Shown here piece by piece: positions 19,786-64,000 of a stretch of DNA of 64,000 nt. The notes below the pieces were generated by a model that made no database searches, was not told the DNA's origin, and saw nothing but the letters and a program-made list of their open reading frames with translations. The stretch is taken from assembly GCA_026936335.1 (NCBI GenBank), contig JAPMXV010000029.1, forward strand, positions 687,366 to 751,365. The letters are read 5' to 3'. The first letter of the stretch is position 1. The number at the start of each line of letters is the position of its first letter. Made by a program: the position numbers and the translations under genes. Source of the stretch: Mantamonas sphyraenae STR306 (lineage: Eukaryota; Protista; CRuMs).

Positions 19786-19841
19786 AGGAAGCAACGGTGG
19801 GATCGGCTGGCAACAGCGCGTGGGGGACCAGACCAAAGGTG

Positions 19842-20764
19842 ATGGACAGCGAGGACCGGTGGCGCGAGCTTCTTGTGAAGCACTCCGGCCAGTTTGACCT
19901 GGACATGGTCACGTCGCTCAACTTGTGTGGCGCTCTGCAATCTCTGTCCCAAAGTGACCTGGGTGTGATTGTGCAACTGTGTCCCTCGCTGCAGGAACTG
20001 GATGTGTCGCAGTTGGGCTTGGACGCCCTGCCCGACAACCTGCACGCACTTGCCTCCCTTCGTCGGCTGGTGGTCATGGGCAACAGGATAGCCTCTTTGG
20101 GTGCGTTCTTTTGCGCATCCTATTGTGTTTTTCTTTTGGTTTGTTTGCATGCGCATGGCCATGGTCCCGTCACAGCACCCGCTGGGGAACCGCGCGGCCG
20201 TTTCCGGCGCGCAACTGGGGTGGACTTTTCCTGCCTGTTCACAGCGCACACGGTTCACGACACACATGGCTGACCATCCCCACCACCCCTTCAGATCCTG
20301 TGGCTGGCCTGGACGCACTTCAGTACCTGGACGTGTCGCATAACAAGCTGGAGACAGCCAAGCAACTGGAGCCGTTGGCCGGCCTGGAGTCGCTCACTAC
20401 GTTGCATGTACAGGGGAACCCAGTGGGAGACGCCAGCGACGAGTTGGTAGAACATCTATCGACGCTTCTGCCCGGTCTCCGCTGCTTGAATGGCGAAAAT
20501 GTGGCGTACAAGCGAGTGCACGACGAGATGATGCAGGAGATCCTTCGCCCGTTGACGCCCATCGAGGTGCCGCCGCAGGATCCTTGGCTTGACAGCGTGG
20601 ATCTTGGCAGTGCCCTCGTGCCATTGGACGGATTCCTGGACACCCAAGCGTGGGACAAACTGGTGGCGTCGTGCCAGCATCTCGTGGCCACGGCAGACGC
20701 CACCGTGCAACTGGCAGAGGCACAACGCAGTGAGCGCGAAGCGGATCAAACGGCCAACGATTAA
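19842..20764 (+). CDS. Leucine-rich repeat protein, LRRC61-like
   Basis: LLVKHSGQFDLDMVTSLNL, LQELDVSQ, LQYLDVSHNKL, LHVQGNPV...LPGLRCLNGE (LRR cap). Intron 20101-20294. Confidence 0.75.
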
Positions 20765-20811
20765 AAAAAAAGACATGGGTTGAGGTGACCTCTGCATTTG
20801 GCATGGCATGC

Positions 20812-23250: not shown

Positions 23251-23285
23251 CTCCGAATTGAGTGGCGAGCCCAGGGCAGGCCAAC

Positions 23286-24560: not shown

Positions 24561-24610
24561 CGGCGCCAACCCCGACAACAAAAAAGAAAACAACCACCAA
24601 CAAAAGCAGC

Positions 24611-27600
24611 ATGCGCAAGCACAGCAGCATCCACGCTGTGCTCGTGGTGTCGATCATCTTGACACTGTTTGTTAGCTTGTCACACGCGGCCATTGCAGAT
24701 TGCTTGGGTAAGCAAGCGGTGTAGTCGTTGCCACTACGGCGCCTCCTGGTGAATACACCCGCACTTACACTCACCTACAACTTCCACTCCCTCGATCTCC
24801 TCGCATCTCCTCGCAGCCGGACACACATACACACCCGCATCATCCTTGCGAGCTTGGATGTGCGCAAACGACGTCCAGACGTCCGGAAGTTCTGTGGACC
24901 AGTTTACAGACCAGTCGGGCTATGGACACCATGCCACAGCAAGTGGCTCCACGCGACCGACGTTGGAAACGAATGTCATCGGCAGCCAGCCTGGTATGCT
25001 GTTTGACGGAAGCAACGACTGCTTCACAATTGCCAATGCGAACGACTTCAACACCGATTTCAACCCCTACACGGGCAAGACCATCTTCATTGTCTTCAAG
25101 ACAGGAGCGAGTGTTACTGCCAAACAAACCCTATACGAACAGGGTGGTGGTACACGTGGTCTGACCATGTACCTCCAGGACAGCCGGCTGTACCTCACGG
25201 CTTACAACCGCGACAACGGACAGGTGTATTGGTACGTGACGCCTCTTTTCCCCGCACATCATGCGCGTGTATACATCGGTTGCTGCCCGAGCGTGCTCCT
25301 CACGCGTGCACTCCGCGTGTCTCTGTGTCGTTGGAGCGCCCGCCCGACGGAAGCCGCCGCATGGATGGATTTCGGATGATGCCTCGATGCGGAAACCACT
25401 AACGCCTTTTCCACGCCCGCATTTCCGCATTGCGCCACACACAGGGATGTGGCGGTGGCCTACGACGACCCCGTCCTCAACAAGACCAAGTACTTTGGTC
25501 TGTATCCTAACCAGTACAACATTCTGGCTTTCCGATGGGAGGCTCAAGGTACGTCCAGGCCCCACATCAGCCCCCTTTTCTTTCCACAGGCGCACCACTC
25601 ACAACACCCTCCCCGGTTCCCTTGCAGGTGCCAACGCAGGCCTCGAGCTCTGGGCAAACGGTTTGTACATGAACCGCAACACAGCCGTCGAGCGCATGTG
25701 GGCGCATAGCGGTACGTCCTCGGCGCCATGTCCCCATCCCCAGAACGCGGCGAAAGCCCGCGAAACTCGTCTATCCAGCACACTCCAGCTCACACACGCC
25801 ACACCTTGATCTTGCGCACTGCATCCTTCACCTCACACCCGTGCTACCTGTGACGTGTACTCTCCCTCACAGGCGACATTAAGCTTGGATGTGGTGCCAG
25901 CGGCATGCGCTACCACGACGGTGCGTTTTTTTGCGTTTCTATGCCCCTCTTGCTTTTCCTCCACCCTACCCTACCCTGCTTCCCCCTCTCGCTCTCTACG
26001 CCTCCCTCTCTCTCTCGCACACTGTCCACACGCCCTCTGCTCACACATCGGCTCTCGCCGTCCCTCCTGCGCCCGTCTCCACGTGCTGCTCGCCATCCGA
26101 ATTCTCTCTGGGCGCAACACATCCTGCGCCGTCGCCACTTCCACAGGCTCCTTCAGCAACATCTACTTTGCTGGCCACATCTCCGAGTTTATCTACTTCA
26201 ACAACGAGGCTCTCAGCCAGGCCAACATGGACGCCACGTTCAACTTTCTGCAACAGAAGTACGGCGAGATTCTCTACGACTCAAGTGCAGGTACGCCACC
26301 TTTCCATGCCTTGCTCACTTTCACTTGGACACATTCAGCCACAGGACATGCCGCACTGAGTGCACATGTGCGACACGTAAACTCACACCCACCCACCCAC
26401 CCACATCCGTCTGCAGTGTGTCCTGGGTTTTTCTCAAACCCTTGCTCCGGCGCCGACCACGGTACCTGTCTCACGTACCCCAACAACACCAAGTATTGCG
26501 AATGCAAGGACCCTTGGATTGGAGAATCGTGCGATACTTGTACGTTGCGCCATGTCGCATGTTGCCGAGCAGGAGCCAAGCCTCTCGCACCCGCACACCC
26601 TCCCATTCACCCTCCCATCCACCCTCGACTCACGCCCCATTCTCTTCCCTCTCACCGCCCTACCCACAGTCAACGGCGAAACAAACTACTGCTACGAAGT
26701 GCGCTGGGATCTTGCAAACCCGGCTGGCTACCGCTCGCGCAACTTTTCGCCCGTAAAGTACTTCCCACCGGGGCATCCGGCAACCACACGCTGCGGAGGC
26801 CTGCCCCCCGACAGCAACGGCCTGTATCGCATCCCCACGTATGGCAACAACCCCGATGATTGTGCACCCAACACTCCGGGCGCTGCAATGTTCTACTCCT
26901 ACGACTACCCGGCAGGCTCGTCCGAAAACACAGGCCTCGCCACAGTCGAAACTGCCACCCTCATCATCACTGTCGACGAAACCTTCAATAGCTCCGTGCT
27001 GTGGATTCTCGACCGCAACAACAACGCCGATGGAGGCCGTGTCGAGGTCTTTCTCGACTCCAAGGTCGTGGGTGGCACGGGCGTCCAGGTCGTCACCAAG
27101 GACGATCCTGCAGGCGACAACACGCAATCTTGTGTCGGCGCAGGAAACGATTGCTACTTTTGGAACACCAACACCGGCGTGGGTGACTTTTACTTCCGCT
27201 GGGTTTCCTGCTGCTCCGACGGCGTTGCATTGGGCGTCATGCCGCGCGAAGTCGACATGAACTATCGCATGAACGTCATTGCAGGCCTCACCCAGTTCCG
27301 CCTCGCAGAGTACGACGGCGAGACAAACCAGATCACCTTTTTCAACATCCCGCTCTCAGAGGCTGCCAAGGGCATCCGTATCCTTGACCGCACCTGCGAG
27401 GCCTCCACCGAGCTCTATTGTTCCCAATACCGCTTCTGTGGCGATTGCACCGCCGATCCCCTCTGTGGTTGGTGCAACGAAGACCTCCGATGCCTCGGCA
27501 AGGACTTTGGCTCCCTCTGCCAAGGCGGACGCTTCCCGCTCAGTTTCACCGTCGAGTGCTGCACCGCTTGCTCCGACCTCTGCAACTGTGGCGATTGCGT

Positions 27601-30600
27601 CCAGCGCGCAGGCTGCGGCTGGTGCCACGACACGGGCAAGTGCTACTCTGGTTCCTCCGCAGCGCCCTGTCAGAACTGCACTTACTTCTCCACAGACACC
27701 TGCGAGACCTGCGGCGGGCCCCTCGACGCTCAGGACAAGCCCGTCGCCTTTGTCGGCGTCAACAACCTCGGACACGCCTCCTACTGCTCCAAGAACGGCA
27801 CCTGCGACTTTTCCAAGAAGCAGTGCACCTGTGTCGACACCAAGTGGGGAGACGGCTGCCAGAACGACTGCCCCGCCATCGTCGACATTGGCGGCGGCGT
27901 CCTCAAGCCCTGCAACGGCAACGGCAAATGCAACCAGACAAGTGGCAACTGCCAGTGCAATTGCGGCTGGACAGGCCCCTACTGCAACCAGACTGCCCCC
28001 GCAGGCTGTGGCATCCAGGGAGGTAACTGTGTCGTCGGTGACACCTGCACACAAACCTGCGGCAAGTGTCTCGCCGGCGACACCCAATGCGTCAACCCCA
28101 CCGGTGTGCTGTTGGCCAACTCCACCACTTGTGCCTGCATCGACGGCTGGTACGGCGCAGACTGTACCTCGCCTTGTCCGGGCATCAGCTCCACAGATGG
28201 CTCAGGCTCAATTTGTGGTGGCTACGGTACTTGTCAGACCGATGGCACCTGCGTTTGCGACTCGTGCTACCAGAACCAGGGCGCAGCAAACACCATCTGT
28301 GTCGACAAGCCCTGCCCAGGTGTTTGCCCCACCGCAACCTTTGGCACTTGCTTTTGTGGCACATGCTCTTGCCCAGGCAATTGGTTCGGTGATGATTGCA
28401 CACAGTGCGCCTGCCAGAACGGCGCCATTTGCCACAGCATCCACGGTGAGTGTGAAGACCCGAGCAACGGCAACCCGTGCCCGCCTGGCTTTGCTGGTGA
28501 CCTGTGTCAGTACAATTGCACGCGCGACGGCTTCTGCAACGGCCGAGGCGAGTGCGACGCAAACACCCTCAAGTGCACCTGTGACGCAGGCTGGGTCGGG
28601 CCTACGACTGCCCCGTGCTCCAAGCAGTGCAACTCCACTGTCGATTGCTCCAACAAGGGCCAATGTCTCGAGGACGCAACTTGCTTCTGTGACTTTGGCT
28701 TCGTCGGCTCCAAGTGCGAGACTGCCTGTGTAAAGGACATCGATGATTGTAACTGCTACCCGCAGATCAACTCGGGGTACATCACCTTCAACGAGGACCC
28801 CCCCGCTGATATTCTCATCGACGTCACCGCCTTTGCCTTTGATGCAGACTCGGCCATCTACTACCAGACGCTCGAGGTGGTCAACCCTCCGACAACGGTA
28901 CCATAGTCAGCATCAACCGCATCACAGGCCACATGTACTACCGCCCCGAGCCAAACTACTTTGGCAACGACACCGTGGGCATCAAGGTCTGCGATGTCGA
29001 GGGCCTCTGTGCAATCGGCGCAATCATCATGAACGTCCTCTCCGTCAACGACCCGCCCGTCGCTCTCGACGGAAGCCTCGGTGCAGACGCAGAGGTCTAT
29101 TCCTACAGCAAGCTCAACGCCACCGATGTCGAGAACGACGCCCTCACCTTCCGTCTCGTCACCCAGCCTACAAAGGGTACCGTCGAGCTGCTCGACAACA
29201 GCACAGGCAGCTTCCGCTTCTACCCGTTCCTCGGTGCAAACGGAACCGACTCGTTCCAGTTTCAGGTCCGCGACAACGGAGACCCCAACGAGGACTCTGT
29301 CAAGAACGGCACGGTCTTCATCCTGGTTGCCATCAAAAACACCGCCCCGACCGTCTACAACGGCACCCTCCAAACCGAGGAGGACGTTCCGGCCACGGGC
29401 ACCCTCGTCGCAACCGACTTTGAAGGCCATCCAGTCGTCTTTACCGTCGAGACGCCGCCCAGTATGGGCACAGTCACCATTCTGGATGCCGGCTCGGGAC
29501 TTTACCGCTACACGCCCGATCTGCATCGCTTCGGCCCCGACGAATTCTCCTTTGTCGCCACAGACATTTTCGGCGACCGCAGCAACATCTCGTGGATCTC
29601 CATCAATGTCACCAGTGTCAACGACCTGCCTCTCTCTTTCAACGAGACCTGGGCCACCATGGAAGACGTCGCCTTCTTTGGTCAGCTCAACGCTTCCGAC
29701 GTGGAGACCTTGCAGGCAAACAGCGTGTTCACCATCACCGTACCCCCGCATTTGGGCACCATTGCCCTTCAGGCGGCCACGGGCGGGGTGTTTTTGTACA
29801 CGCCCAACGCAAACGTCAACGGCGTCGACTACTTTGCGTACACGGTCACGGACGAGGCTGGTGGCGTCTCCAACGCCTCCTGGGTCAACGTAACCATCTA
29901 CGCAGTCAACGACGCGCCCGACTTTGTCGTCCTCCCGTCGCCTCCAAGCACCGTCGAGGACACAGACCTCACCTTTGCAGGCCTGGCTGTCACCGACGCT
30001 GACGTCGCAGCGGACGACCAGCTCGTGCTGAACGTCACCATCACCGACGGTGCGCTGACTTTGCAGCGCACAGACAGCCTTGTGCTCGTCAGTGGCTCCA
30101 CCACAGCCAGCCAGGCTTTTGTCCTGCGTGGCAATCTGACAAAGATCAACCAGGCCATCACAGACATGGTCTTTGTCCCTCCACCCGGCTGGAGTGGCGA
30201 CGCCTACATGAACCTGTGGGCAAGTGACAACGGCGCCACAGGCAGTGGCGGGGTCCAGTACGGCATGCGCAACGTCTCCATCAACGTGCAAACCGTCAAC
30301 GATCCGCCCTCGCTCCTTCTGCCCAGTGCACAAACCGTCAACGAGGACGTCGACCTCACCATCGTGGGCATCAGCATGAACGACGTCGACGTCTACACAG
30401 CCAACATGCAGGTCAACATGAGCGTCACCGCAGGTGTGCTCACCCTCGCCCAGACCACAGGACTCACGTTCCTCACGGGCGACGGGTCCGCAGACACCCT
30501 GCTCCGCTTCCAGGGCACCCTCACGGATTGCAACGCAGCCGTGGCCTCCGTTGTCTACCGTGCCAACCTGCACTACAACGGCGCAGACTCGCTGCAAGTC

Positions 30601-33600
30601 ATCGTCGATGACCGCGGCAACACAGGCTCCGGCGGCATCCTTTCCGCTTCAGGCGTCGTGGCTCTCACCATCACGCCCGTCAACGACGCACCCGTGCTCA
30701 CGCTTGCCTCGCCGCAGGTCACCAACGAAGACACCTCGGTGGCCATTGGAGGCATCAGTGTGAGCGACGTCGACGTCGCCGCAGGAACACTGGCCGCCAA
30801 CGTCAGCGTGACCAACGGCCTGCTGACCATGAGCAGCCTCGGCGGCTCCATTGTGCAAGTCCAGGGCAACGCAACCCAGGGCGCAACCGACCTTCGCATC
30901 CGTGGCTCGCTCACAGACATCAACGCAGCGCTCGCTTCGCTTGTCTACGCTCCCAACGCAGACTACAACGGCGCCGATACCCTCCAGGTGTGGGTCAGCG
31001 ACCTTGAACTCAGCGACGCGGGCTCCGTGGCCATTTCGGTTGTGGCTCTCAACGACGGGCCCGTCATCACTTTGCCCGGCACGCCCTCGACCCTCGAGGA
31101 CACCGCCCTCACCATCACTGGTATCAGCGTCAGCGATGCCGATGTGGCTGCCGGTCTCATGTGGCTCAACATGACCATGAGCGAGGGCGAAATGGTACTC
31201 GGTACCACCCTCGGTCTCACCATGTACGTGGGCACAGGCTTGGGCGGCAACGCTTTCAACGCCCAGGGCACGCTGACCACTCTCAACTCGGCTCTTGCCC
31301 AGGTCATCTACCGTCCCAGCACAAACTTCAACGGTGCCCCGTCGCTGGAGGTGCGTGTTTCGGATCGCGGCGCCACAGGTGTTGGCGGAGCCCTGGAGGA
31401 TGTCAAGACGCTGCCCATCACCGTGCAGGCTGTCAACGACGCCCCCATTCTCTCGGTGCCTCCTGCACAGACTGTGGACGAGGACGTGGATCTCACGCTG
31501 CCTTCGCTCAGTATCGCCGACGTCGACATCGCCGCTGGGCTCGTCAACGTCAACCTCAGCGTGGCCACGGGTGTACTCAGCCTCGCCAGCACCACGGGCA
31601 TCTCTGTCCAGGCTGGCAGTGCCACCAGCAGTGCCTTTATCCAGTTTGTCGGCACCCTGACCAACGTCAACACTGCCCTCGCGGGTGTGGTGTACCGCGC
31701 TGCACAGGACTACGCTGGCTCGGACCAGCTCGACGTGTTCATCAGTGACCTCGGCAACACCGGGCTTGGAGGCGCACTCAACGACACGGGTTCGGTCGCC
31801 ATTACGGTGCAGCCCGTCAACGACGCACCAGTCATCACCACCATCACGGACCAGACCGTCTCCGAAGACACCGACCTCACCATCTTGGGCATTGGAGTGA
31901 CCGACATCGACAGCGGCGACGGCACGTTGCGTTTCAACCTCACCGTCCAGTCGGGAACCATCACCATGCCCAACCCTGCTGGCATCGAGTTTCAGCTCGG
32001 GGGACCCTCGGGCTACTCTGCGCTCTCGTTCACAGGCAACGTCACGTCCATCAACGCGGCTGTGGGTACTCTGGTCTACCGTTCCTTTGTCAACTTTGAC
32101 GGCAGCGACACGCTGTCGGTTGCCACTCGAGACTATGGAAACACGGGCTCCGGTCCTGAGGGCACCCACAGCGTCACCATCGGCATTACCGTCATCGGCG
32201 TCAACGATCTCATCGAGTTTTCCAACCCGGCAACAGCCTCTGTTGACGAAGACACGGATCTCACTCTTGCTGGCATCAGCGTCAGCGACAGTGACGCCTA
32301 TGCAAACGCCGTGCGTGTCAACGTCAGCGTGTCGTCTGGCACGGTGACCCTGGCCCAGACCACGGGCTTGACGCTGCTCAGCGGCTCAGGCTCTGCAGAC
32401 GCCTTTGTCGAAGTCCTGGGCACGCTGACCAACATCAACGCCGCCCTGAACAACCTCGTGTACCGTGCAAGCACGCACTACAACGGCCCAGAAACCATCC
32501 TGCTGGGTGCAGCCGATCTCGGCGCTACCGGCACGCCTGGGCCAACGAGCTCGTTCAGCAATGTCTCGGTCACCGTCGCCGCTGTGAACGATGCACCTGT
32601 GCTGACCGTTCCCGCGGCCACTCAAACCACCCTGGAGGATGTGGCACTTACAATCACTGGTGTCAGCGTAAGCGACGTCGATGTGGCTGCCGCAAATGTC
32701 AATGTGACTCTCTCCGTCTCTTCGGGTGTCCTCTCCCTCGGCTCCACAACAGGCCTGACTTTCGGCTCGGGCGACGGCACCGCAGATCGCTCCATGTCCT
32801 TTGAGGGCACGCTCACAAGTGTCAACGCAGCCCTCGCGGCATCGGGCGTCGTGTACCTCGGCGATGCAAACTACAACGGGCCCGACGGCCTCTATGTTGA
32901 AGTGGACGATGGAGGAGCCACGGGACAGGGTGGCGTGCAACGGAACAGCACCACAGTGGCCCTGTATGTTGAGGGAGTCAACGACCCGCCTGTGCTCACA
33001 AGCATCAGCGCACAAACCGTCGACGAAGACACGGATCTGACCATGTCCGGCTTTGCCATCACGGATTTGGACGTCGGTTCCCTCCCGCTGCAGGTCAACA
33101 TCAGCGTAAGCCAGGGTGTGCTCACCGTCGGCTCTCTTGCAGGCCTCACGTTTGTGCAAGGGGACGGCTCCGCAGACGCACAGATGCGCTTCCAGGGTTC
33201 GCTTACCGCCGTCACGGCCGCTCTCAACGGCCTCGTGTACCGCGGCAACCTGCACTTCAACGGCGCAGACACCCTCAGCGTGGGTGTGGATGACCGTGGC
33301 AACGTGGGTCTTGGTGGCTTCCTCACAGATGCTGCCACGGTGGCCATCACCGTGGAGGCCGTCAACGACGCGCCTGTGCTCACCGTGCCTGGTTTGCAGG
33401 CAGCCACTGAGGATGTGCAGCACACCATCAGTGGCGTGAGCGTGTCCGATGTCGACGTCGCTGCAGGCCTGATGAGTGTCAACCTCACAGTCACGGCAGG
33501 CACCCTGTGGCTTCCCACAACCACCTCGCTCACCTTTGCTCTTGGCGACGGCACCAACGACCGCCGCATGGAGATGACGGGCACGCGCACCGCACTGAAC

Positions 33601-36600
33601 ACAGCCCTGGCCGCCATTGTGTACCAAGGCGACCTTCACTGGAACCAGGGTGACACGGTCACCGTGGACGTGCACGACTACGCGCAGACAGGCAAGGGAG
33701 GCCAGCTTGCCGACACAGCAACCATTCCCATCAACTTTGTGGCTGTCAACGATGCGCCTGTACTCACGGTGCCACCTGCTCAAGCGGGTTCGGAAGATGT
33801 CGACCTCCCCATCACGGGCATCAACATCACCGATGTCGACGTGGCAGGAGGCCAGCTGCGTGTCCAGATCGGCGTCACATCCGGTGTGTTGACCCTGGCC
33901 ACCACGGTCGGGCTCAACTTTGCCTCCGGAGGTGGCTTTGCGGACGCAAGCATGGACTTCCAAGGCACGCTGACCCAGGTCAACAACGCTTTGGCCACAG
34001 TCACCTATCTCACCGACCTGCACTACAACGGCAACGATGCCGTTTCCATTGCCGTGTACGATCAGGGCAACACAGGTGTGGGTGGCGTCCTGCAGGACTC
34101 GGGCAACATCCCGCTCACGCTTCAGGCCGTCAACGACGCACCTACCTTTGGTGTGCCTGGTACGCAGAATGTGGACGAGGACACAGATCTCACCATTTAC
34201 TTGGTGGGATTCACCGTTTCCGACGTGGATCTGTTCGGCGCAGATGTGCAGGTCAACCTTTCGTGTGCCTCGTGTCTGATGAACCTGACCACCACCACGG
34301 GCCTGGAATTCGTGGTCGGCGATGGCTTCCTCGACCCGTTCATGTCCTTTACCGGCACTCGCACAGAGGTGAACAACGCCATCACAACCGTCGTTTACCG
34401 TGGCGAACCCGACTTCAACGGTTTCGACGCCGTGACGGCGGTCGTGTCCGATCGTGGCTTCACCGGTTTTGGCGGTGAAAAGTTTTCCACCGACCAAACC
34501 GCGATCATCGTGAACCCGGTGAACGACGAGGTCATCATCACCATCCCCACGGCCCTGTTTGTGTCCGAGGACATTGCGTACAGCATCGACAGCGTCAGCA
34601 TCACCGACGTGGACATCGGGTCCGGCATCATGTCGGCCAACTTGTCTGTGAGCCACGGTTTGTTGCAGCTCGCATCCACCGAAGGCCTGACCTTTGCAGA
34701 GGGCAGTGCCGCACCCGGGCGTGTTTTCCGCTTGGATGGCAACGTGACCAACATCGCCAAGGCGCTTCTGAACATGACCTACACGAGCGACCTGCACTAC
34801 CACGGCACAGACTACCTCTACATCGAGGCGACGGACAACGAGATTGGCAACGCCACGTTTACATGGAAGTATCTGGCCATCAACGTGGAGGCAGTCAACG
34901 ATGCGCCTGTGCTCAGCGTGCCTGGCGCACAGGCGGTGAGCGAAGACGTGGCCATCACCCTCAATGGGATCAACGTCACCGATGTGGACGTGGATGCAGC
35001 CACCATGTTCTTCAACATCACGGCTGACCATGGTGTCATGTCCCTGGCCACCACCACGGGCTTTGCCATGACGTTTGGAGACGGAACAGCCGACACGGCC
35101 ATGCGCTTCACAAGCACTTTGACCAGTTTCAACACGGCTATGGCCGGTGGGCTCGTGTACCAGGGCAACCTGCACTTCAACGGCATCGAGACAATCCACA
35201 TCACAGCCAGCGACCAGGGCAACACGGGCGTCACCGGAGGTGTGCTGCAGGATCTGCGCACCATTGTCATCAACGTGACTGCCGTCAATGACGCTCCCGT
35301 GTGGACGGTGCCTTCTGCACAGACTGTGGACGAGGATGTCACCTTGAACATCACAGGCATCTCGTTGAGTGATGTCGATGTCGAGGCTCTCCCCATGGAG
35401 GTTAGCCTGCGCGTGTCCAACGGCACCTACAACCTTGCCTCCACAGCAGGCCTGACCTTTACGACGGGCACAGGCGCAAACGACCGGGAAACCGTGCTGC
35501 GTGGCTCTCTGACCGACATCAACGCCGCCCTGGTGTGGTTGACCTACACCGGCGACTTTGAGTTCTCCGGTTTGGACACTCTCCAGCTCAGTGTCAACGA
35601 TCTTGGCCACGTCGGCGACGTCGGGCCGCTCTCCGACGCTGCCTCGGTGCCCATCAATGTCGTGATCATCAACGACGCCCCACAGCTCTCCGTGAGCAGC
35701 TCCCAATCCGTTAGTGAAGACACAGACGTCACGATTGCAGGCATGAGCGTGACCGATGTGGATGTGTTTGACCAGTCCATGCGTCTCAACGTGTCGGCTT
35801 CCAACGGTGTCGTCACTTTTGTCACCACCACAGGACTGTCGTTCCTGTCCGGCACCAGCAACGGCGCATCGCTGCTCAACGTGCGCGGCACAGTGACTCA
35901 GATCAACGCAGCCCTGGGCACGGTCGTCTACCGTGGCAACCTGCATTGGTACGGCCAAGACCAGCTGCAGATTGCCGTCGACGATGAGGGCAACACAGGA
36001 AACGGGGGCGTCCAGAGCGCCTCTGGCGTCGTCAACGTCACTGTTACGGCTGTCAACGACGCGCCTGTGCTCCAGGCAGTCAGCGATCAGACGGTGAACG
36101 AAGACACAGATCTGACCATTGCTGGTATTGGTGTGAGCGACGTGGATGTGTACGCCGTGCCACTTGAGGTCAACGTCAGCGTGTCGCAGGGAGTGCTCTC
36201 GCTGCCCAACACGGCCGGTTTGACATTCTTGGTTGGCGACGGCCAAGACGATGCCTTTATGCGCATTCGCGCCACCGTGACCAACATGCACGCTGCCCTG
36301 TCACCTATTGTGTACCGTGCGGCCCAGGATTACAACGGAGCAGACACGCTGCAGGTCAGCGCCAGCGATTTGGGCGAGTCTGGCTTTGGTGGCGAGCTGC
36401 GTGATGCCTTTACAGTGGGCATCACCGTGCAGGCCGTCAACGATGTGCCCATCTTTGGCATCATCACTGACCAGGCCGTCAACGAGGACACAGACTTGAC
36501 CATGCTGGGCATCACCGTCACCGACGTCGATGTCTTTGCTGGTGCTCTTACCGTCAACGTGAGCGTCGGCCACGGAGTGCTCACCCTCCCCAACACGGCT

Positions 36601-54600: not shown

Positions 54601-57600
54601 AACGACGCGCCTGTGCTGAGTGTGCCGAGTGGACAGAGCGGCGTTGAGGACACGGATCTGACGATTGGTGGCATCAGCGTGAGCGATGTGGACATTGCGG
54701 GCAGTCTGCTGCTGGTGAACGTGAGCGCAAGCCAGGGTGTGGTGACACTGGGCAGCATGAGCGGCGTGACGATTGTGGACGGAGCAGCATCGGGCACGAA
54801 GGATGTGCGCTTTGTGGCGACGCTGACAAACGCAAACGCGGCGCTGAACAACATTGTGTACCGTGGAGACGCGCAGTACAATGGAGGAGACACGATCACG
54901 GTGACAGTGAACGACCAGGGAGCAAGTGGCACGGGTGGAGCACTGGGCGACACGCGCACGATTGGTGTGAGTGTGAGTGCGGTGAACGACGCGCCTGTGT
55001 TGACTGTGCCTGGTGGACAGAACGTGAACGAGGACGTTCAGTTGACGATCACGGGTGTTTCGGTGACCGACGTCGACGTGGGTGCAGGGCTGCTGCAAGT
55101 CAACGTGAGTGTGGCTTCCGGTCGTGTGTGGTTGAAGTCCCTGGCCGGCCTTGGAGTGGAAGCAGGCAGTGGCAGCGGTGATGCCAGCCTGCGTGTGGTC
55201 GGCAACCTGACGTCTGTGAATGCGGCGCTGTCCGAGATGGTGTACCAGGGCAACCTGCACTTTGTGGGTGCCGACAGCTTGGCGATTGCAGTGAACGATC
55301 TGGGCAACACCGGGTCGGGTGGTGCTTTGGGCGATGCACAGAGCATTGCGGTGACTGTGGCAGGTGTGAACGACGCGCCTGTTCTGAGTGTGCCGAGTGC
55401 GCAGAGCGGCATGGAGGACACGGACATTGCGCTCGGTGGCATCAGCGTGAGCGATGTGGACGTGGCTGCGAACGAACTTGTGGTTGATCTGCAGGTGAGC
55501 AGCGGTGTTCTGACGCTTGGCGGCACGACGACGGGCCTGACGTTTGTGACGGGCGGTCCGTCGCTGAACGCCGTGATGCGCTTCCGAGGCAGCCTGACGA
55601 ACATCAACACGGCGATGAGCAGTGTGGTGTACCGTGGCAACACGCACTACAACGGAGCGGACACGGTGCTGGTTACTGTGAACGACCAGGGAGCCGTGGG
55701 CATTGGTGGTGCTCTGAGCGATGCGGCCAATGTGTCTGTGACTGTGAATGCTGTGAACGACGCACCTTCGGTCGCTGTGGGTGGAGCCCAGAATGTGGAC
55801 GAAGACGAACTCCTCGGTGTCACAGGGATCTCTGTGGCGGATGTGGATGTCGCTGGAACAAGCATGACGGTGAACGTAAGCGTGAGCCGTGGTGTGTTGA
55901 CCCTGGGTTCGTCGACGGGACTTGTGTTTTCAAGTGGCGACGGAGCTGCTGATGCGTCGATGGTGTTTTCAGGCACGCTGACGAGTGTGAACAGTGCGTT
56001 GGCGACGCTGCAGTACCAGGGCAACCTGGACTTCAACGGATTGGACAACGTGGTCGTTGGCGTTAGTGACAACGGAGGTACTGGAGCTGGTGGGGCGCTG
56101 TCAGCTTCCGCCAGCAAGCTTCTGGTTGTGAACGCGGTGAACGACAAGGTGAACATCACGGTGCTGGACACGCAGAGCGTGAACGAGGACACGGACCTGA
56201 CCATGTATGGCATCAGCATCTCTGATGTGGACATTGGAGGCGACACGATGCTTGTGAACGTGACGGTGACGGAGGGCCTTGTGAGCCTTGGCAACACTGC
56301 AGGGTTGACGTTTACGCAGGGTGACGGTGCGGCGGACGCGGATGTGCGCTTCTCGGGCAACCTGACGGCAATCAACGCGGCGCTGAACGGCCTTGTGTAT
56401 CGCGGTGCGCAGCACTGGAATGGTGCTGAGCTGCTGCGTGTGTGGGCGTCTGATCAGGGCTTCGGCAGTGCGAACGGCACGGTGACGGAGACGGAGAAGC
56501 TTCAGGTGATCAACGTGCTTGCTGTAAACGACGCGCCTGTGATCGGTGTGACAAGCAGCAGCGTGGCGACGGCTGAGGATGTGAGCGTGAATGTGACTGG
56601 CCTGAGTGTGAGTGACGTTGACGTGATGGCATCTGCAGTGTCTGTGAATCTGACTGCGACCAGTGGTGTGATGACGCTCGGATCGACGAGTGGGCTCGCT
56701 TTCACGCTTGGCAGTGGCAACTCGAACAAGGAGATGCAGTTCTCGGGCACCTTGACTGCAGTGAACGCTGCGTTGGCATCTGGCGTGTCGTATGTGGGAG
56801 ATGTGCATTTCAACGGGGCCGACAGCATTGTGGTGACTGTGAGTGACCAGGGTGCAAGTGGATCTGGTGGAGAACAGACGGCAACGGCGACGATCGCTGT
56901 GAGCGTGAGCGCTGTGAACGACGGGCCTGTATTGAGTGTGCCCAGTGCACAGAACGCGGTGGAGGACACTGATCTGACGATCGGTGGCATTAGCGTGAGT
57001 GACGTGGATGTGGCGGGCAGCAACGTGCGTTTCAACGTGAGCGTTAGCAACGGTCGCGTTTGGTTGGCAAGCACGACGGGCCTTGTGTTCGCAGAGGGCG
57101 ACGGAGTGTCTGATGTGCGTGTGCGTGCAGAGGGCACGCTGACCGCGGTGAACGCGGCACTTGCCAGCGTTGTCTACCACGGCGATGCCAACTTTGTCGG
57201 TGTGGATAGCCTGCTTGTCTCTGTGGATGACAATGGCAACACCGGAAGTGGTGGCGTTTTGTCTGCGTCGAAGTGTGGTGAGTGAGCATCGTGGTCGCGA
57301 GTGTGAACGATGGACCTGTGCTGAGCGTGCCTGGTGGTCAGAGCGCTGTGGAAGACACGACGCTGGTGATCAACGGGATCAGTGTGAGCGACACGGACGC
57401 GGGAACGGGACAGATGTACTTCAATGTGACGAGCGTGAACGGTGTTGTGACTTTTGGCACAACCACGGGTTTCACGTTTGTGGTTGGCGACGGAGTGTCA
57501 GACAGCCGTGTGGAGTTCACGGCATCGCAGCAGGCGTTCAACGCGTCGATGATTGCGAGTGGCCTGGCGTATCGCGGCAACGCCCACTTTGAAGGAGCAG

Positions 57601-60600
57601 ATGTGATCACGTTGACAGTGAATGATCAAGGCAACACGGGCGGATCGGCATTGAACGACACGCGCACGATTGGTGTGAGTGTGAGTGCGGTGAACGACGC
57701 GCCTGTGCTGACTGTGCCCGGTGGACAGAACGTGAACGAGGAGACCGACCTGACGATCGGCGGTATCAGCGTGGCAGATGTGGACGCAGCAGCCGGTGTG
57801 GTTGCCGTGAACGTGAGTGTGACGTCTGGTCAGATGTGGCTGGGCAGCACGAGCGGCCTTGTGTTTGGTGCTGGCAACGGCAGCAGCGACGCAACGGTGC
57901 GTTTCACGGGCACGTTGACCAACGTGAACGCAGCGCTGACGAACCTGGTGTATCGTGGCAACGCGAACTTCCAGGGCACGGACAGCGTGGTGTTGAGTGT
58001 GAACGATCTGGGCAACACGGGCGCGGGTGGAGCGCTGGGTGACAGTGCCGTGATTGTGGTGACTGTGGCCGAAGTGAACGATGCGCCTGTGCTGACGGCA
58101 CCGGCCACTGTGAGTGTGAACGAAGACACGAGCAGTGCCATTGGCGGTCTGAGCGTGGTCGATGGCGACGTTGGCAGCGCGCGCATGCAACTGCGTCTGA
58201 GTGTGTCACAGGGTGTGTTGAGCCTGGGTAGCACAAGCGGACTGTTGTTTGCTGTTGGTGACGGCGTGTCTGACAGCACGATTGAGTGCAACGGCACGGT
58301 GACGGATGTGAACGCGGCTTTGGGCAGCGTGACGTACGTGGCAAACAGCAACTACAACGGAGCGGATACGCTGGCTGTGTTTGTGGACGACCTCGGCAAC
58401 AGTGGTCTGGGAGGAGCACTGAACGACACGGCGAACGTGGCGATCACGGTTGTGGCTGTGAACGACGGCCCTGTGCTGAGTGTTGTGTCTGCACAGAGTG
58501 TGGCTGAGGACGTGGATCTGACGATCAACGGCATCAGCGTGACGGACGTGGACGTTGCAGGCAACGCATTGCAGGCGAACGTGAGCGTGAGCCAGGGTGT
58601 GGTGACCGCAGTGACGACGACGGGCCTGACATTCAGTGTTGGGCGACGGTGCGTCGGACGCGACGATGAGCTTCACGGGCACGCTGACCCAGGTGCAGAC
58701 GGCACTGGGTGTGCTGGTGTACCGCGGGGCACAGGATTACAACGGCGCAGACACGCTTGTGGTGCGCGTGAGTGACCTGGGCAACGTGGGTGTGGGCGGA
58801 GAGTTGACAGACAGCGGCAGCGTGGGCATCACGGTGACGCAGGTGAACGACCGCCCTGCCATCACACCTGTGGGTGGAGTGAACGTGGACGAGGACACGG
58901 ATCTGACGATTGCAGGCATCACTGTGACGGACATTGACGTGGGCGGAGAGTCCATGGAGATGAACTTGACGGTGACGCATGGTGTGCTGACAAGCGTGAA
59001 CGCAGGCGGCGTGACGTTTGTGTCTGGCACGAGCAACGGAGGACGCAGTCTGGTGCTGAACGGCACGGTGACGGCGCTGAACGCGGCCATCGGGCAGGTG
59101 GTGTACCACGGCGACCTGCACTTCTTTGGCAGCGACTCGCTCGAACTGAGCGTGCGCGACAAGGGCAACACGGGAGCCGGCGGTGAGCAGACAGACAGCC
59201 AGAGTGTGGCGATCACTGTGAATGGTGTGAACGATGCGCTGGTGATCACTCTGCCGAGTGCACAGAGTGTGGCTGAGGACACGGATCTGACGATTGGTGG
59301 CATCAGCGTGAGCGATGTGGACGTGGCCGGATTTGCGTTCCGAGTGAACGTGAGTGTGAGCGCAGGCAGCCTGTGGCTGGGCAGCACGACGGGTCTGACG
59401 TTTGGCAGTGGCGACGGAGTGAACGACACGTGGATTGTGTTTGACGGGTCGATCACGGCTGTGAACGCAGCACTGTCGAACATGGTGTACCGTGGAGTGA
59501 CACACAGTACAACGGAGCAGACGGGCTTGTTGTGTGGGTGTCTGACCAGGGAGCAGTCGGCAGCGGTGGTGAGCAGGTGTCGAACAAGACGCTTGTGATC
59601 AACGTGGTGGCTGTGAACGATGCACCTGTGCTGAGTGTGCCTGGGGCACAGAGCACGGCCGAGGACACTGCGCTGACAGTGAGCGGCGTGAGTGTGGCGG
59701 ACGTGGACGTCGCGGGCGGAGCGATGAACGTGAACGTGAGTGTGAGTGCTGGCCGAGTGTGGCTGGCGAGCACGAACGGCCTTGTGTTCAGTGCAGGCAA
59801 CGGCAGCAGCGACGGACGGGTGGAGTTCAGCGGCAGCGTGACGGATGTGAACAACGCGCTGGCGACAGTTGTGTACATGCCGGACAGTGCGTTCAACGGA
59901 GTGGACAGCATTGTGGTGAGCGTGAACGACGGTGGCAACACGGGCAGTGGCGGAGTGCTTGGAGACAGTGGCAGCATTGTTGTGACTGTGTCGAGCGTGA
60001 ACGACGCGCCTGTGCTGAGTGTGCCGAGTGGACAGAGCGGCGTTGAGGACACGGATCTGACGATTGGTGGCATCAGCGTGAGCGATGTGGACATTGCGGG
60101 CAGTCTGCTGCTGGTGAACGTGAGCGCAAGCCAGGGTGTGGTGACACTGGGCAGCATGAGCGGCGTGACGATTGTGGACGGAGCAGCATCGGGCACGAAG
60201 GATGTGCGCTTTGTGGCGACGCTGACAAACGCAAACGCGGCGCTGAACAACATTGTGTACCGTGGAGACGCGCAGTACAATGGAGGAGACACGATCACGG
60301 TGACAGTGAACGACCAGGGAGCAAGTGGCACGGGTGGAGCACTGGGCGACACGCGCACGATTGGTGTGAGTGTGAGTGCGGTGAACGACGCGCCTGTGTT
60401 GACTGTGCCTGGTGGACAGAACGTGAACGAGGAGACCGACCTGACGATCGGCGGTATCAGCGTGGCAGATGTGGACGCAGCAGCCGGTGTGGTTGCCGTG
60501 AACGTGAGTGTGACGTCTGGTCAGATGTGGCTGGGCAGCACGAGCGGCCTTGTGTTTGGTGCTGGCAACGGCAGCAGCGACGCAACGGTGCGTTTCACGG

Positions 60601-63600
60601 GCACGTTGACCAACGTGAACGCAGCGCTGACGAACCTGGTGTATCGTGGCAACGCGAACTTCCAGGGCACGGACAGCGTGGTGTTGAGTGTGAACGATCT
60701 GGGCAACACGGGCGCGGGTGGAGCGCTGGGTGACAGTGCCGTGATTGTGGTGACTGTGGCCGAAGTGAACGATGCGCCTGTGCTGACGGCACCGGTCACT
60801 GTGAGTGTGAACGAAGACACGAGCAGTGCCATTGGCGGTCTGAGCGTGGTCGATGGCGACGTTGGCAGCGCGCGCATGCAACTGCGTCTGAGTGTGTCAC
60901 AGGTGTGTTGAGCCTGGGTAGCACAAGCGGACTGTTGTTTGCTGTTGGTGACGGCGTGTCTGACAGCACGATTGAGTGCAACGGCACGGTGACGGATGTG
61001 AACGCGGCTTTGGGCAGCGTGACGTACGTGGCAAACAGCAACTACAACGGAGCGGATACGCTGGCTGTGTTTGTGGACGACCTCGGCAACAGTGGTCTGG
61101 GAGGAGCACTGAACGACACGGCGAACGTGGCGATCACGGTTGTGGCTGTGAACGACGGCCCTGTGCTGAGTGTTGTGTCTGCACAGAGTGTGGCTGAGGA
61201 CGTGGATCTGACGATCAACGGCATCAGCGTGACGGACGTGGACGTTGCGGGCAACGCATTGCAGGCGAACGTGAGCGTGAGCCAGGGTGTGGTGACCGCA
61301 GTGACGACGACGGGCCTGACATTCAGTGTGGGCGACGGTGCGTCGGACGCGACGATGAGCTTCACGGGCACGCTGACCCAGGTGCAGACGGCACTGGGTG
61401 TGCTGGTGTACCGCGGGGCACAGGATTACAACGGCGCAGACACGCTTGTGGTGCGCGTGAGTGACCTGGGCAACGTGGGTGTGGGCGGAGAGTTGACAGA
61501 CAGCGGGCAGCGTGGGCATCACGGTGACGCAGGTGAACGACCGCCCTGCCATCACACCTGTGGGTGGAGTGAACGTGGACGAGGACACGGATCTGACGAT
61601 TGCAGGCATCACTGTGACGGACATTGACGTGGGCGGAGAGTCCATGGAGATGAACTTGACGGTGACGCATGGTGTGCTGACGAGCGTGAACGCAGGCGGC
61701 GTGACGTTTGTGTCTGGCACAAGCAACGGAGGACGCAGTCTGGTGCTGAACGGCACGGTGACGGCGCTGAACGCGGCCATCGGGCAGGTGGTGTACCACG
61801 GCGACCTGCACTTCTTTGGCAGCGACTCGCTCGAACTGAGCGTGCGCGACAAGGGCAACACGGGAGCCGGCGGTGAGCAGACAGACAGCCAGAGTGTGGC
61901 GATCACTGTGAATGGTGTGAACGACGCGCTGGTGATCACTCTGCCGAGTGCACAGAGTGTGGCTGAGGACACGGATCTGACGATTGGTGGCATCAGCGTG
62001 AGCGATGTGGACGTGGCCGGATTTGCGTTCCGAGTGAACGTGAGTGTGAGCGCAGGCAGCCTGTGGCTGGGCAGCACGACGGGTCTGACGTTTGGCAGTG
62101 GCGACGGAGTGAACGACACGTGGATTGTGTTTGACGGGTCGATCACGGCTGTGAACGCAGCACTGTCGAACATGGTGTACCGTGGAGTGACACAGTACAA
62201 CGGAGCAGACGGGCTTGTTTGTGTGGGTGTCTGACCAGGGAGCAGTCGGGAGCGGTGGTGAGCAGGTGTCGAACAAGACGCTTGTGATCAACGTGGTGGC
62301 TGTGAACGACGCACCTGTGCTGAGTGTGCCTGGGCACAGAGCACGGCCGAGGACACTGCGCTGACAGTGAGCGGCGTGAGTGTGGCGGACGTGGACGTCG
62401 CGGGCGGAGCGATGAACGTGAACGTGAGTGTGAGTGCTGGCCGAGTGTGGCTGGCGAGCACGAACGGCCTTGTGTTCAGTGCAGGCAACGGCAGCAGCGA
62501 CGGACGGGTGGAGTTCAGCGGCAGCGTGACGGATGTGAACAACGCGCTGGCGACAGTTGTGTACATGCCGGACAGTGCGTTCAACGGAGTGGACAGCATT
62601 GTGGTGAGCGTGAACGACGGTGGCAACACGGGCAGTGGCGGAGTGCTTGGAGACAGTGGCAGCATTGTTGTGACTGTGTCGAGCGTGAACGACGCGCCTG
62701 TGCTGAGTGTGCCGAGTGGACAGAGCGGCGTTGAGGACACGGATCTGACGATTGGTGCATCAGCGTGAGCGATGTGGACATTGCGGGCAGTCTGCTGCTG
62801 GTGAACGTGAGCGCAAGCCAGGGTGTGGTGACACTGGGCAGCATGAGCGGCGTGACGATTGTGGACGGAGCAGCATCGGGCACGAAGGATGTGCGCTTTG
62901 TGGCGACGCTGACAAACGCAAACGCGGCGCTGAACAACATTGTGTACCGTGGAGACGCGCAGTACAATGGAGGAGACACGATCACGGTGACAGTGAACGA
63001 CCAGGGAGCTAGTGGCACGGGTGGAGCACTGGGCGACACGCGCACGATTGGTGTGAGTGTGAGTGCGGTGAACGACGCGCCTGTGCTGACTGTGCCTGGT
63101 GGACAGAACGTGAACGAGGAGACCGACCTGACGATCGGCGGTATCAGCGTGGCAGATGTGGACGCAGCAGCCGGTGTGGTTGCCGTGAACGTGAGTGTGA
63201 CGTCTGGTCAGATGTGGCTGGGCAGCACGAGCGGCCTTGTGTTTGGTGCTGGCAACGGCAGCAGCGACGCAACGGTGCGCTTCACGAGCACGTTGACCAA
63301 CGTGAACGCAGCGCTGACAACCTGGTGTATCGTGGCAACGCGAACTTCCAGGGCACGGACAGCGTGGTGTTGAGTGTGAACGATCTGGGCAACACGGGCG
63401 CGCGGGTGGAGCACTGGGTGACAGTGCCGTGATTGTGGTGACTGTGGCCGAAGTGAACGATGCGCCTGTGCTGACGGCACCGGCCACTGTGAGTGTGAAC
63501 GAGACACGAGCAGTGCCATTGGCGGTCTGAGCGTGGTCGATGGCGACGTTGGCAGCGCGCGCATGCAACTGCGTCTGAGTGTGTCACAGGTGTGTTGAGC

Positions 63601-64000
63601 CTGGGTAGTCACAAGCGGACTGTTGTTTGCTGTTGGTGAACGGCGTGTCTGACAGCACGATTGAGTGCAACGGCACGGTGACCGGATGTGAACGCCGGCT
63701 TTGGGCAAGCGTGACGTACGTGGCAAACAGCAACTACAACGGAGCGGATACGCTGGCTGTGTTTGTGGACGACCTCGGCAACAGTGGTCTGGGAGGAGCA
63801 CTGAACGACACGCGCGACGTGCGATCACGAAGTTGTGGCTGTGAACGACGGCCCCTGTGCTGAGTGTTTGTGTCTGCACAGAGTGTGGCTGAGGACGTGG
63901 ATCTGACGATCAACGGCATCACAGCGTGACGGACGTGGATGTTGCAGGCAACGCATTCCAGGCGACGGTGAGCGTGAGCCAGGGTGTGGTGAACCGCAGT
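24611..64000 (+). CDS. Giant secreted/cell-surface adhesin-like protein (more than about 12,700 aa, 3' truncated): SP - LamG-like - EGF - unknown domain - PSI - EGF array - 4 short Ig-like repeats - about 88 cadherin-like modules
   Basis: Exons 24611-24707, 24817-25231, 25445-25548, 25628-25711, 25873-25920, 26147-26290, 26417-26539 and 26670->64000 splice in frame with GT-AG. ORFs 26519, 28933, 41405, 44454, 52165, 57282 etc. continue the same protein across 1-2 nt indels. Confidence 0.9.
27410..28740 (+). other. Cys-rich PSI and EGF/laminin-EGF repeat block of the giant protein
   Basis: CGDCTADPLCGWC and CGDCVQRAGCGWC (PSI). Repeated C.gnG.C....C.C..GW.G..C (EGF). Confidence 0.85.
28757..29904 (+). 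repeat. Four ~95-96 aa Ig-like (tandem-95/Big_9-type) repeats
   Basis: Starts near 28757, 29044, 29332 and 29617 (285-288 bp apart). Motifs P..GT, Y.P..N..G.D.F, VND.P. Confidence 0.75.
29905..64000 (+). repeat. Array of ~128-aa cadherin-like/Ig-like modules (about 384-390 bp each, about 88 copies by length)
   Basis: Consensus VNDAP...ED..L.I.G.SV.DVD...VNVSV..G.L.L...GLTF..G.G..D...F.GT...VN.AL...VY.....G.D.L.V.V.D.G..G.GG.L. Confidence 0.92.
42650..64000 (+). repeat. Near-identical 7-module higher-order repeat (2,688 bp, modules A-G) in four blocks: ~42650-43897, ~47641-49609, ~50484-55032, ~57654-64000
   Basis: The DNA gtgaacgaccg(c/a)cctgccatcacacctgtgggtgg recurs at ~42650, 48051, 50757, 53446, 58844 and 61534. 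Confidence 0.92.

Follow-up and report, generated by a model that had tools for sequence, protein, structure and literature searches.

We analyzed a window of 64,000 nucleotides (nt) from the genome of the marine gliding flagellate Mantamonas sphyraenae STR306 (Eukaryota; CRuMs), in which a giant gene starts at position 24,611 and runs on the forward strand to the last base. The window is part of contig JAPMXV010000029.1 (hereafter C29; G000:C29:687366-751365) and its base 64,000 is the final base of that contig, which with 751,365 bases is the longest of the 78 contigs of the assembly (25,061,354 bases in total). Positions below are those of the window unless a contig is named. Up to the contig end the exons of the gene add up to 38,346 nt, corresponding to 12,782 codons, and the last exon reaches the end of the contig. 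M. sphyraenae probably has two giant paralogues, and we regard the window as carrying the 5′ part of one; each of the two would encode a single membrane-anchored surface protein with a cysteine-rich head, a very long stalk of cadherin-like modules, three membrane spans and a cytoplasmic tail. The full protein of the window gene probably exceeds 17,000 residues, which would place it among the longest proteins known. M. sphyraenae is a diploid cell of 3–5 µm, the genes of which are mostly single-exon with an average length of 2.3 kb.

Architecture and expression of the gene

The stalk occupies 29,044–64,000, lies in one exon and comprises approximately 91 tandem modules of the Cadherin_4/Big_9 type, each of 128 residues (384 nt). 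The number was obtained from a linker motif that recurs every ~128 residues from 29,044 on, in agreement with the ~90 immunoglobulin (Ig)/cadherin-like modules described in the initial annotation of this DNA. Hidden Markov model searches, which that annotation had suggested, found Cadherin_4 (PF17803) at 430, 262, 175 and 112 bits (cut-off 25.1; 6–17 stretches per piece searched) and Big_9 (PF17963) at 151, 124 and 89 bits (cut-off 23.6), with best E-values of 8e-132, 2.6e-79 and 3.4e-52 for the stalk pieces; PSI also exceeded its cut-off (see below). In an alignment of 30 modules, N2, D3 and P5 (NDAP), E17 (ED), D30 and D32 (DVD), G47, T77, D106 and G111 were invariant, so the acidic ED, DVD and VNDAP motifs noticed earlier are genuine features of the module. 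The NCBIfam tandem-95 model (NF012211; cut-off 90 bits) gave 17.5 bits with a three-module query and 64 bits with a piece of contig C32 (see below), Pfam Cadherin (PF00028) gave no match in the pieces searched at E ≤ 0.01, and a sequence search of the PDB with three modules found no match. The structure of a module pair, predicted by AlphaFold2 with a mean predicted local distance difference test score (pLDDT) of 90, consisted of two beta-sandwiches, and its best fold matches in the PDB (Foldseek) were cadherin-23, N-cadherin, protocadherins, CELSR1 and the extender repeats of an Aeromonas RTX adhesin. Thus, the predicted fold of the pair resembles both cadherin and RTX-adhesin tandems.

In 4,193 residues of the stalk we counted 439 D+E against 108 K+R and five Cys. 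Sequons for N-glycosylation (N-x-S/T) occur approximately twice per module, and one of them, at module positions 41–43 (e.g., window 33,481–33,489), was found in 25 of the 30 modules; the bacterial consensus reads V-T-L at these positions, and the sequon is not enriched there in the modules of M. plastica or Entosiphon. From 47,640 to 64,000 the modules are organized in a tandem array of super-repeats, the units of which span 2,688 bp (seven modules) and are 98–99% identical to each other (BLAST unit scan), with about every fourth unit being a variant. The gene breaks off inside this array at the end of C29, and three further contigs, C27 (~18 units, 48 kb), C32 and C28, also end in the array. 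A cadherin-like module is ~4.5 nm long; at this spacing, 91 modules would give a chain of about 0.4 µm, and 175 modules or more a chain of about 0.8 µm.

The head comprises 1,078 residues, including 94 Cys. Exon 1 (24,611–24,707) supplies the start codon and a predicted signal peptide of the classical type and of ~26 residues, in which a few basic residues lead into a hydrophobic core (~17 residues) and the likely cleavage site is preceded by small residues. Four ATGs precede the first splice donor, and the one at 24,611 alone stays open through the spliced product, in line with the start and the signal peptide proposed earlier. Exons 2–6 (24,817–26,290, interrupted by four introns) would encode a LamG-like (concanavalin-type) region of ~265 residues. 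The tip had been called LamG-like in the initial annotation, and the support obtained for this is indirect: Laminin_G_3 (PF13385) matched neither any single exon nor the window locus in a six-frame scan, but exon 2 is 56% identical to a stretch of contig C44 (C44:522408-522803) that is overlapped, in the same open frame, by a Laminin_G_3 match of 29.1 bits (cut-off 27.6). Inspection by eye and the homology to the C44 paralogue suggest that exons 2–6 may form a LamG-like jelly-roll.

Exon 7 (26,417–26,539) encodes a single EGF-like domain (DUF7949 at 27.5 bits, cut-off 27; EGF and EGF_2 weak). At the start of exon 8 lies an orphan domain of ~240 residues (26,670–27,406), which matched no Pfam or NCBIfam family and gave no usable look-alike in an Atlas feature search; the head part of exon 8 had no homologue among 5.8 billion proteins of 406–1293 residues. 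The orphan domain is followed by two PSI-like domains (PF01437; 27,419–27,703), of which the first scored above the cut-off of 23.1 bits (25.5 bits at 27,419–27,499) and the second just below it (21.6 bits at 27,569–27,703), and by a Cys-rich block of tenascin/teneurin-type EGF repeats (27,704–28,750). In this block EGF_2 (24.4–25.4 bits; cut-off 22.1) and EGF_Teneurin (24.6–25.5 bits; cut-off 24.3) exceeded their cut-offs, and EGF_TEN, the model of the teneurin EGF array, reached 31–32 bits, under its cut-off of 65. The EGF/PSI block proposed earlier is thereby recovered, and the domain matches support a head of eukaryotic, animal-like style, with signal peptide, EGF and PSI domains and, by homology to the paralogue, a LamG-like region.

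The 5′ region of the gene is transcribed and spliced. We aligned contigs from four public sequencing runs to 24,400–30,399 of the window; one of these runs, X2, is of DNA, and another, X3, was judged to be RNA-derived because seven segments of the genome, each bounded by GT..AG, are missing from one of its contigs (6,280 nt, depth 134). These introns, the cuts of which were shifted to the GT..AG position, lie at 24,708–24,816, 25,232–25,444, 25,549–25,627, 25,712–25,872, 25,921–26,146, 26,291–26,416 and 26,540–26,669, with GTAAG, GTACG or GTGCG at the donors and CAG at the acceptors. Altogether, the region of 24,708–26,669 is divided by seven spliceosomal introns that separate exons 2–7, as in the eight-exon model of the initial annotation, and the first 5.8 kb of the gene appears in correctly spliced form in the X3 contigs. 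From 26,959 to 30,255 the X3 contigs are colinear with the genome and contain no further splice joint.

Several smaller observations concern the same region. In the upstream direction the spliced X3 contig continues uninterrupted for 4,735 nt beyond 24,400 (window 19,665–24,706), so that transcripts of the upstream gene or genes, including a 432-codon frame at 23,262–24,557, overlap with those of the giant gene or are read through into it; the contig is equally compatible with either. The DNA contigs and the assembly differ by small indels at 25,373, 25,967 and 26,587, all of them intronic, which reflect heterozygosity or consensus errors. One X3 contig carries ~27 differences within 100 nt at 27,646–27,739, in the EGF/PSI region, where contigs of X1 and X2 agree with the assembly; this patch may represent a second allele or a copy from a related repeat.

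For the 3′ end of the gene, we turn to two of the three other contigs that end in the array. On the minus strand of C32 an array-bearing gene can be followed from the end of the contig (402,225) as far as a stop codon after 374,065, with IML1/DEPDC5 downstream of the stop. Its last 1,400 residues comprise six domains of ~115 residues, a hydrophobic span, a loop of ~60 residues, a double span of ~44 residues and a tail of 534 residues, the spans and the stop being located by hydropathy peaks and the stop codon, respectively. S, G, P and E are abundant in the tail, which also contains acidic runs and P-x-LP motifs. The corresponding region of C28 is 94–99% identical to that of C32 in the stalk and the membrane-proximal domains and nearly identical in the spans, and the two tails are ~70% identical with conserved islands. 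A complete open reading frame of M. plastica (4,357 residues) aligned at 38% identity over 1,070 residues, through the six domains and the membrane spans. The motif LP..P.LP.L.GG[YW], followed by an acidic run (residues 4033–4052 of the last C32 reading frame), is kept in C28 and M. plastica in tails that otherwise diverge. We find it likely that the repeat-bearing ends on C32 and C28 provide the matching 3′ end, in which further modules and six Ig-like domains precede the three membrane spans and the predicted cytoplasmic tail; extending the search beyond C29, as proposed at the outset, thus led to a candidate membrane-anchored C-terminus.

The ~115-residue domain (L019:5649-8192, minus strand of C32) has the consensus DPDN.D...S.GDTIT..F...TN.P...TK...D.LF.FS..LG.DY.G.W and belongs to no Pfam family, and 708 cluster representatives matched it at E ≤ 0.001. 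Its alignment contains no conserved Cys. It was found in giant proteins of Andalucia, Mastigamoeba, Thecamonas, Fabomonas and haptophytes, and one planctomycete protein possesses 22 copies. An Ig-like sandwich was predicted for it with a pLDDT of 88; the nearest structures were surface-layer (S-layer) domains (Z 7.5) and the nearest Atlas clusters were eukaryotic, mainly of haptophytes. Searches of the PDB by sequence, with the C-terminal 1,412 residues and with a profile of this domain, found no match.

The second of the two paralogous genes has its 5′ part on C27. The head and the first four modules are 71–87% identical between the window gene and the C27 gene (300-nt bins), after which a stretch of ~19 kb of the stalk (30,850–49,450) is ~100% identical. 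The upstream flanks of the two genes (8.6 kb for the window gene and 9.3 kb for the C27 gene) are each single-copy in the genome and mutually unrelated, and the idea that C27 is a haplotig of C29 was rejected on this ground. Between the two genes, the head part of exon 8 shows a synonymous divergence (dS) of 0.89 and a ratio of nonsynonymous to synonymous divergence (dN/dS) of 0.155; the ratio is 0.185 for the orphan domain and 0.33 for the first modules. The simplest reading of these sequence comparisons is that two old functional genes have diverged in their heads under purifying selection, and that inter-locus gene conversion has homogenized their stalks.

The family is larger than these two genes. 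Counterparts of both exon 2 and the PSI pair are present in genes on C27, C44 (an open frame of 9,721 codons) and C61 (3,601 codons), so that at least four genes share the head, and Cadherin_4 modules were also detected on C4, C8, C13 and C56. According to the search coordinates, from which the architecture of these two genes is known, C44:522,400-553,000 and C61:61,900-75,900 (minus strand) encode a LamG-like/PSI head followed by Cadherin_4 modules. The C44 gene, having its frame on a single contig, would be the best complete member of the family to study. Laminin_G_3 matched at 75 places in the genome, many of them in open frames of 4,000–6,800 codons on at least 20 contigs. Judging from these matches, the small genome of M. 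sphyraenae is unusually rich in genes for giant proteins of a putative surface type.

Candidate function of the protein

The architecture suggests the following scheme. The protein would enter the secretory pathway and span the membrane, with its head outside the cell and its tail on the cytoplasmic side. At the module junctions, the invariant acidic residues (NDAP, E17, DxD and D106) would serve as Ca2+ ligands in the manner of cadherins and of the repeat adhesins of bacteria, and bound Ca2+ would stiffen the chain to a rod 0.4 µm (the part encoded in the window) to ~1 µm long, on a cell of 3–5 µm. The LamG-like/EGF/PSI head would act as a binding tip, and the conserved tail may couple the rod to the cell interior. 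In the two paralogues, the heads would have diverged under purifying selection, with gene conversion keeping the stalks near-identical. Of these steps, we infer Ca2+-dependent stiffening as the best-supported mechanism, because the acidic junction set is common with the bacterial relatives and the predicted fold is cadherin-like. The selected, locus-specific heads argue for specific binding, and the conservation of the anchor and the tail points to a connection with the cell. On the basis of the heads, the anchor and the tail together, the most likely role would be to make contact with the substratum or with prey while the cell glides and feeds.

The main rival explanation retains the protein and changes its role, from an adhesin or traction element to a mucin-like filament of a protective glycocalyx or coat that limits adhesion. 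We consider it rather unlikely. The abundance of sequons, one of them kept in 25 of the 30 modules and absent at that position in the bacterial relatives, and the strongly acidic stalk fit a coat filament. The membrane-proximal ~115-residue domain weakly matched FMG1B, the coat glycoprotein of Chlamydomonas (Foldseek; TMq 0.46, root-mean-square deviation 3.5, E 0.03), the loss of which raises adhesion and leaves gliding intact. However, this match is weak and absent by sequence, and the Ig-like domains of S-layers score as well or better. The heads, which are under purifying selection and differ between the paralogues, suggest specific binding, and a long tail that is conserved on the cytoplasmic side would fit a link to the cell interior. 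We therefore retain contact with the substratum or prey as the favored role.

A bolder version of this proposal, which we offer as a tentative and on balance unlikely one, holds that M. sphyraenae builds single-polypeptide rods of 17,000 to ~30,000 residues, 0.5–1 µm long and equivalent to at least a fifth of the cell length, which would rank with the largest proteins of any organism and in which a bacterial adhesin module has been recruited into a eukaryotic receptor frame; these rods would be the traction and capture elements of gliding and feeding, coupled to the cell via the LPxxPxLP-acidic tail, with diversifying heads and gene-converted stalks.

If the probable reading given at the start, of two giant genes for membrane-anchored surface proteins, is correct, a 25-Mb genome with genes of 2.3 kb on average would carry genes of 50–90 kb that encode some of the longest polypeptides known. 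It would furnish a clear case of a bacterial extracellular module inside a eukaryotic receptor-like frame (signal peptide, EGF/PSI head, anchor and tail), a concrete candidate for the gliding and feeding surface machinery of CRuMs flagellates, and an instance of concerted evolution of stalks between loci alongside diverging heads.

Gene length, identical stalks and frame switches

Together with the 3′ part beyond the array (at least 4,474 codons), the 12,782 codons of the 5′ part would give a total of at least ~17,000 codons for the window gene. The C27 gene has a 5′ part of ~23,400 codons (71.2 kb on the contig) and, with the same 3′ part of at least 4,474 codons, would reach ~28,000 codons if the array is correctly assembled. 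The term 'titin-scale', used in the initial annotation, seems, if anything, too modest, as the C27 paralogue spans 71 kb in the same reading and the membrane-anchored 3′ part lies on other contigs.

These sizes, and the gene conversion between the loci, would be wrong if the identical stalks were in part an artefact of the assembly, in which case there would be one long stalk, or stalks less alike than they appear because reads of two loci had been mixed in the consensus. PacBio reads (N50 11 kb) were assembled by FALCON and the result was polished by means of Racon and Pilon (PMC10492846). Reads of this length do not reach across the stretch that the loci have in common; moreover, identity rises abruptly to ~100% at ~30.85 kb, for 19 kb, and all four contigs end within the array. 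On the other hand, the stalk is entered from two different heads, each with its own unique flank, and left through two different tails, each with its own downstream sequence, as expected of two genes, and the stalk identity is patchy (94–99% locally) instead of that of a pure copy. An artefact of this kind is therefore improbable in our opinion, and we keep two genes with converted stalks as the preferred reading.

The assembled exon 8 repeatedly switches its reading frame. Switches were found at ~28,889, 41,470, 44,585, 52,212, 57,273–81, 58,641, 59,097/59,500, 60,902, 61,505, 62,218/62,332, 62,757 and 63,319, at least 13 in the window, with similar numbers in C27, C28 and C32, and they become denser toward the contig end (~18 indels in the final ~600 nt). 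The initial description of one frame of more than 12,700 residues that runs off the window therefore stands as to extent (12,782 codons to the contig end) but not as to an unbroken frame in the assembled DNA. Every switch in the window corresponds to an indel of 1–5 nt relative to the C27 copy, in which the frame is open: 4,276 codons run over the site at 28,889, 1,735 codons over those at 41,470 (2 nt fewer in the window than in C27) and 44,585 (1 nt more), and 3,454 codons over 52,212–59,097. Conversely, the switches of C27 itself (at 168,575, 169,854, 170,169, 174,966 and 178,367 of that contig) are open in the window. At 28,888–28,890, where the assembly apparently switches from frame 2 to frame 1, the contigs of X2 and X3 and part of those of X1 have one extra base, as does C27, and with this base the frame is restored.

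As C27 is open at each site, a base from read-derived contigs restores the frame at 28,888–28,890, and the switches cluster in the repeats and at the contig end, we regard the late frame switches, on sequence evidence, as uncorrected long-read consensus indels, and neither introns nor splice sites. Near-identical repeats and contig ends, in which the indels pile up, are places where short-read polishing fails. Introns at the late switches were rejected because the breaks are unshared with the paralogue and the site tested, 28,889, is an assembly error, so any apparent splicing at the later internal breaks is an artefact of the assembly. The X3 contigs run across 28,889 with the extra base. Since the assembly holds uncorrected indels and breaks in the array, these loci must be split into fragments in the published annotation.

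The same switches would have another meaning if both copies were decaying pseudogenes or encoded several shorter products. Their number in the window and in the three other contigs, and the single site compared with contigs, leave some room for this explanation, which we nevertheless judge to be very improbable. No break is common to copies that are otherwise ~100% identical, the sole site tested proved to be an assembly error, and the breaks concentrate in near-identical repeats and at contig ends, where polishing fails; besides, the heads have evolved at a dN/dS of 0.155, and transcription and correct splicing are seen for the 5.8 kb at the 5′ end.

Several points weigh against the proposal of two intact giant genes for membrane-anchored adhesive proteins. 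The link from C29 to C32 or C28 is a putative one, and the long-read assembly of 2.7-kb units that are 98–99% identical can be wrong, so that the copy number of the array, and hence the full length, may differ from the values given here. One frame break (28,889) was checked against read-derived contigs and the others were judged by comparison with the paralogue, and the RNA coverage examined is that of 24.4–30.4 kb, by means of contigs and not reads. As for the function, we infer Ca2+ binding, surface location, topology and an adhesive role; the C32 tail has no NPxY or known cytoskeleton-binding motif, and in Chlamydomonas FMG1B limits adhesion and is dispensable for gliding, its loss raising adhesion (bioRxiv 10.1101/2024.09.28.615573). 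Two paralogous genes for single membrane-anchored surface proteins are, with these points included, what we hold to be probable.

Origin of the modules and comparison with known systems

The stalk matched 190 database proteins of 2,300–7,300 residues at E ≤ 1e-10. The named matches are mostly of Planctomycetota, Magnetococcales and cyanobacteria, and the eukaryotic ones are of M. plastica and the gliding euglenid Entosiphon; related pieces were found in apusomonads, ancyromonads, jakobids and euglenids. Thus, the module type is not confined to the window gene, occurring in other genes of M. sphyraenae, in M. plastica and in Entosiphon. The two best matches lie on contigs with MreB/MreC or twin-arginine translocation (TAT)-signal and xanthine-dehydrogenase neighbors, and we regard them as bacterial because of these neighbors. 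A profile of the M. sphyraenae module aligned 180 domains of 15 named bacterial proteins across the same 128 positions, with N2, D3, P5, E17, D30, D32, G47, G96, D106 and G108 conserved in at least 80% of them. The notion of bacterial-adhesin-type modules is borne out by this common profile with its conserved residues and by the two best matches.

In the module phylogeny, which had been proposed as a check and was inferred with FastTree (the deep support is weak), 11 of the 12 M. sphyraenae modules had an M. plastica module as the nearest non-self neighbor, implying that the modules are older than the split of M. sphyraenae and M. plastica. We rejected bacterial contamination or a recent bacterial insert misread as a protist gene, the probability of which is next to nil, since, even though the modules are of a bacterial family and their two best matches sit on bacterial contigs, the gene uses spliceosomal introns in RNA, has a signal peptide and an EGF/PSI head that shares an exon with the modules, is located on the longest nuclear contig, with eukaryotic genes around it, and carries modules that predate the split of the two Mantamonas species.

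No description of these giant proteins was found in the literature searched. The M. plastica protein of 4,357 residues, derived from a transcript (EP00003_P025455; P0004), is uncharacterized. It has Cadherin_4 modules that interleave with those of M. sphyraenae in the tree, and it aligns with the M. sphyraenae family through all six membrane-proximal domains and all three spans and, in places, along the tail, but it is much shorter and its N-terminal part bears no similarity to the M. sphyraenae head. It may be the orthologue of another family member. The Entosiphon sulcatum protein P0063 (7,024 residues, expressed) combines, in the Pfam list, F5/8 type C and VWA domains with Cadherin_4, and may represent a parallel use of the bacterial-type module.

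The bacterial tandem-95/Cadherin_4-Big_9 giants (of Planctomycetota, Magnetococcales and cyanobacteria, and the metagenomic P0001 and P0002) resemble it in the stalk: the named proteins bear the tandem-95 label of NCBIfam, and all possess the same module with N2, D3, P5, E17, D30, D32, G47, G96 and D106, are 33–39% identical over ~1,900 residues and, like the Mantamonas protein, extend over thousands of residues in tandem modules. The Mantamonas protein differs from them in its eukaryotic signal peptide, introns, EGF/PSI/LamG-like head, Ig-like membrane-proximal domains, three spans and tail, and its modules carry a conserved N-x-S/T sequon that the bacterial modules lack. The RTX repeat adhesins, represented by the Aeromonas hydrophila extender repeats (PDB 6XI1), likewise have a long tandem Ig-like extender and were among the best fold matches (19% identity); unlike in these adhesins, no RTX nonapeptide (HemolysinCabind) or type-1 secretion end was found by Pfam, and a membrane anchor and a low-complexity tail are present instead.

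Cadherins such as cadherin-23, protocadherin-15, CELSR and Fat, which include the top Foldseek matches, are built of tandem beta-sandwich modules and are membrane-anchored with the chain outside. Their Ca2+ sites consist of an early acidic residue, a DxD motif, a late Asp and an xNDxP linker, and the acidic pattern of the Mantamonas module, with positions taken from the 30-module alignment, recalls these sites. In contrast to cadherins, there is no match to PF00028, the modules have 128 instead of ~110 residues, and no catenin-type tail is present; the number of modules is 3–8 times that of the longest animal cadherins.

Among surface proteins of protists, SibA-E of Dictyostelium (named for their similarity to integrin beta) are membrane-anchored adhesion receptors with extracellular repeats of a bacterial kind (PMC9453864). 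The Ig_SibA model matched the Mantamonas gene weakly (22.3 bits; cut-off 27) and the M. plastica protein P0004 clearly. Different from SibA-E, the Mantamonas protein has no VWA match and no NPxY talin-binding motif, would cross the membrane three times instead of once, and is ~10 times larger. FMG1B (PDB 9GOS) is very large, repeat-built, N-glycosylated and membrane-anchored, and belongs to a cell that glides on its flagella, but it shows no sequence match (profile against the PDB), and its repeats have a conserved Cys pair whereas the Mantamonas domains and stalk are nearly Cys-free; FMG1B forms a compact coat, and the Mantamonas protein a predicted cadherin-like chain. Giant repeat adhesins and protist receptors with bacterial-type repeats are thus kinds already known, and the protein described here does not constitute a new category beside them.

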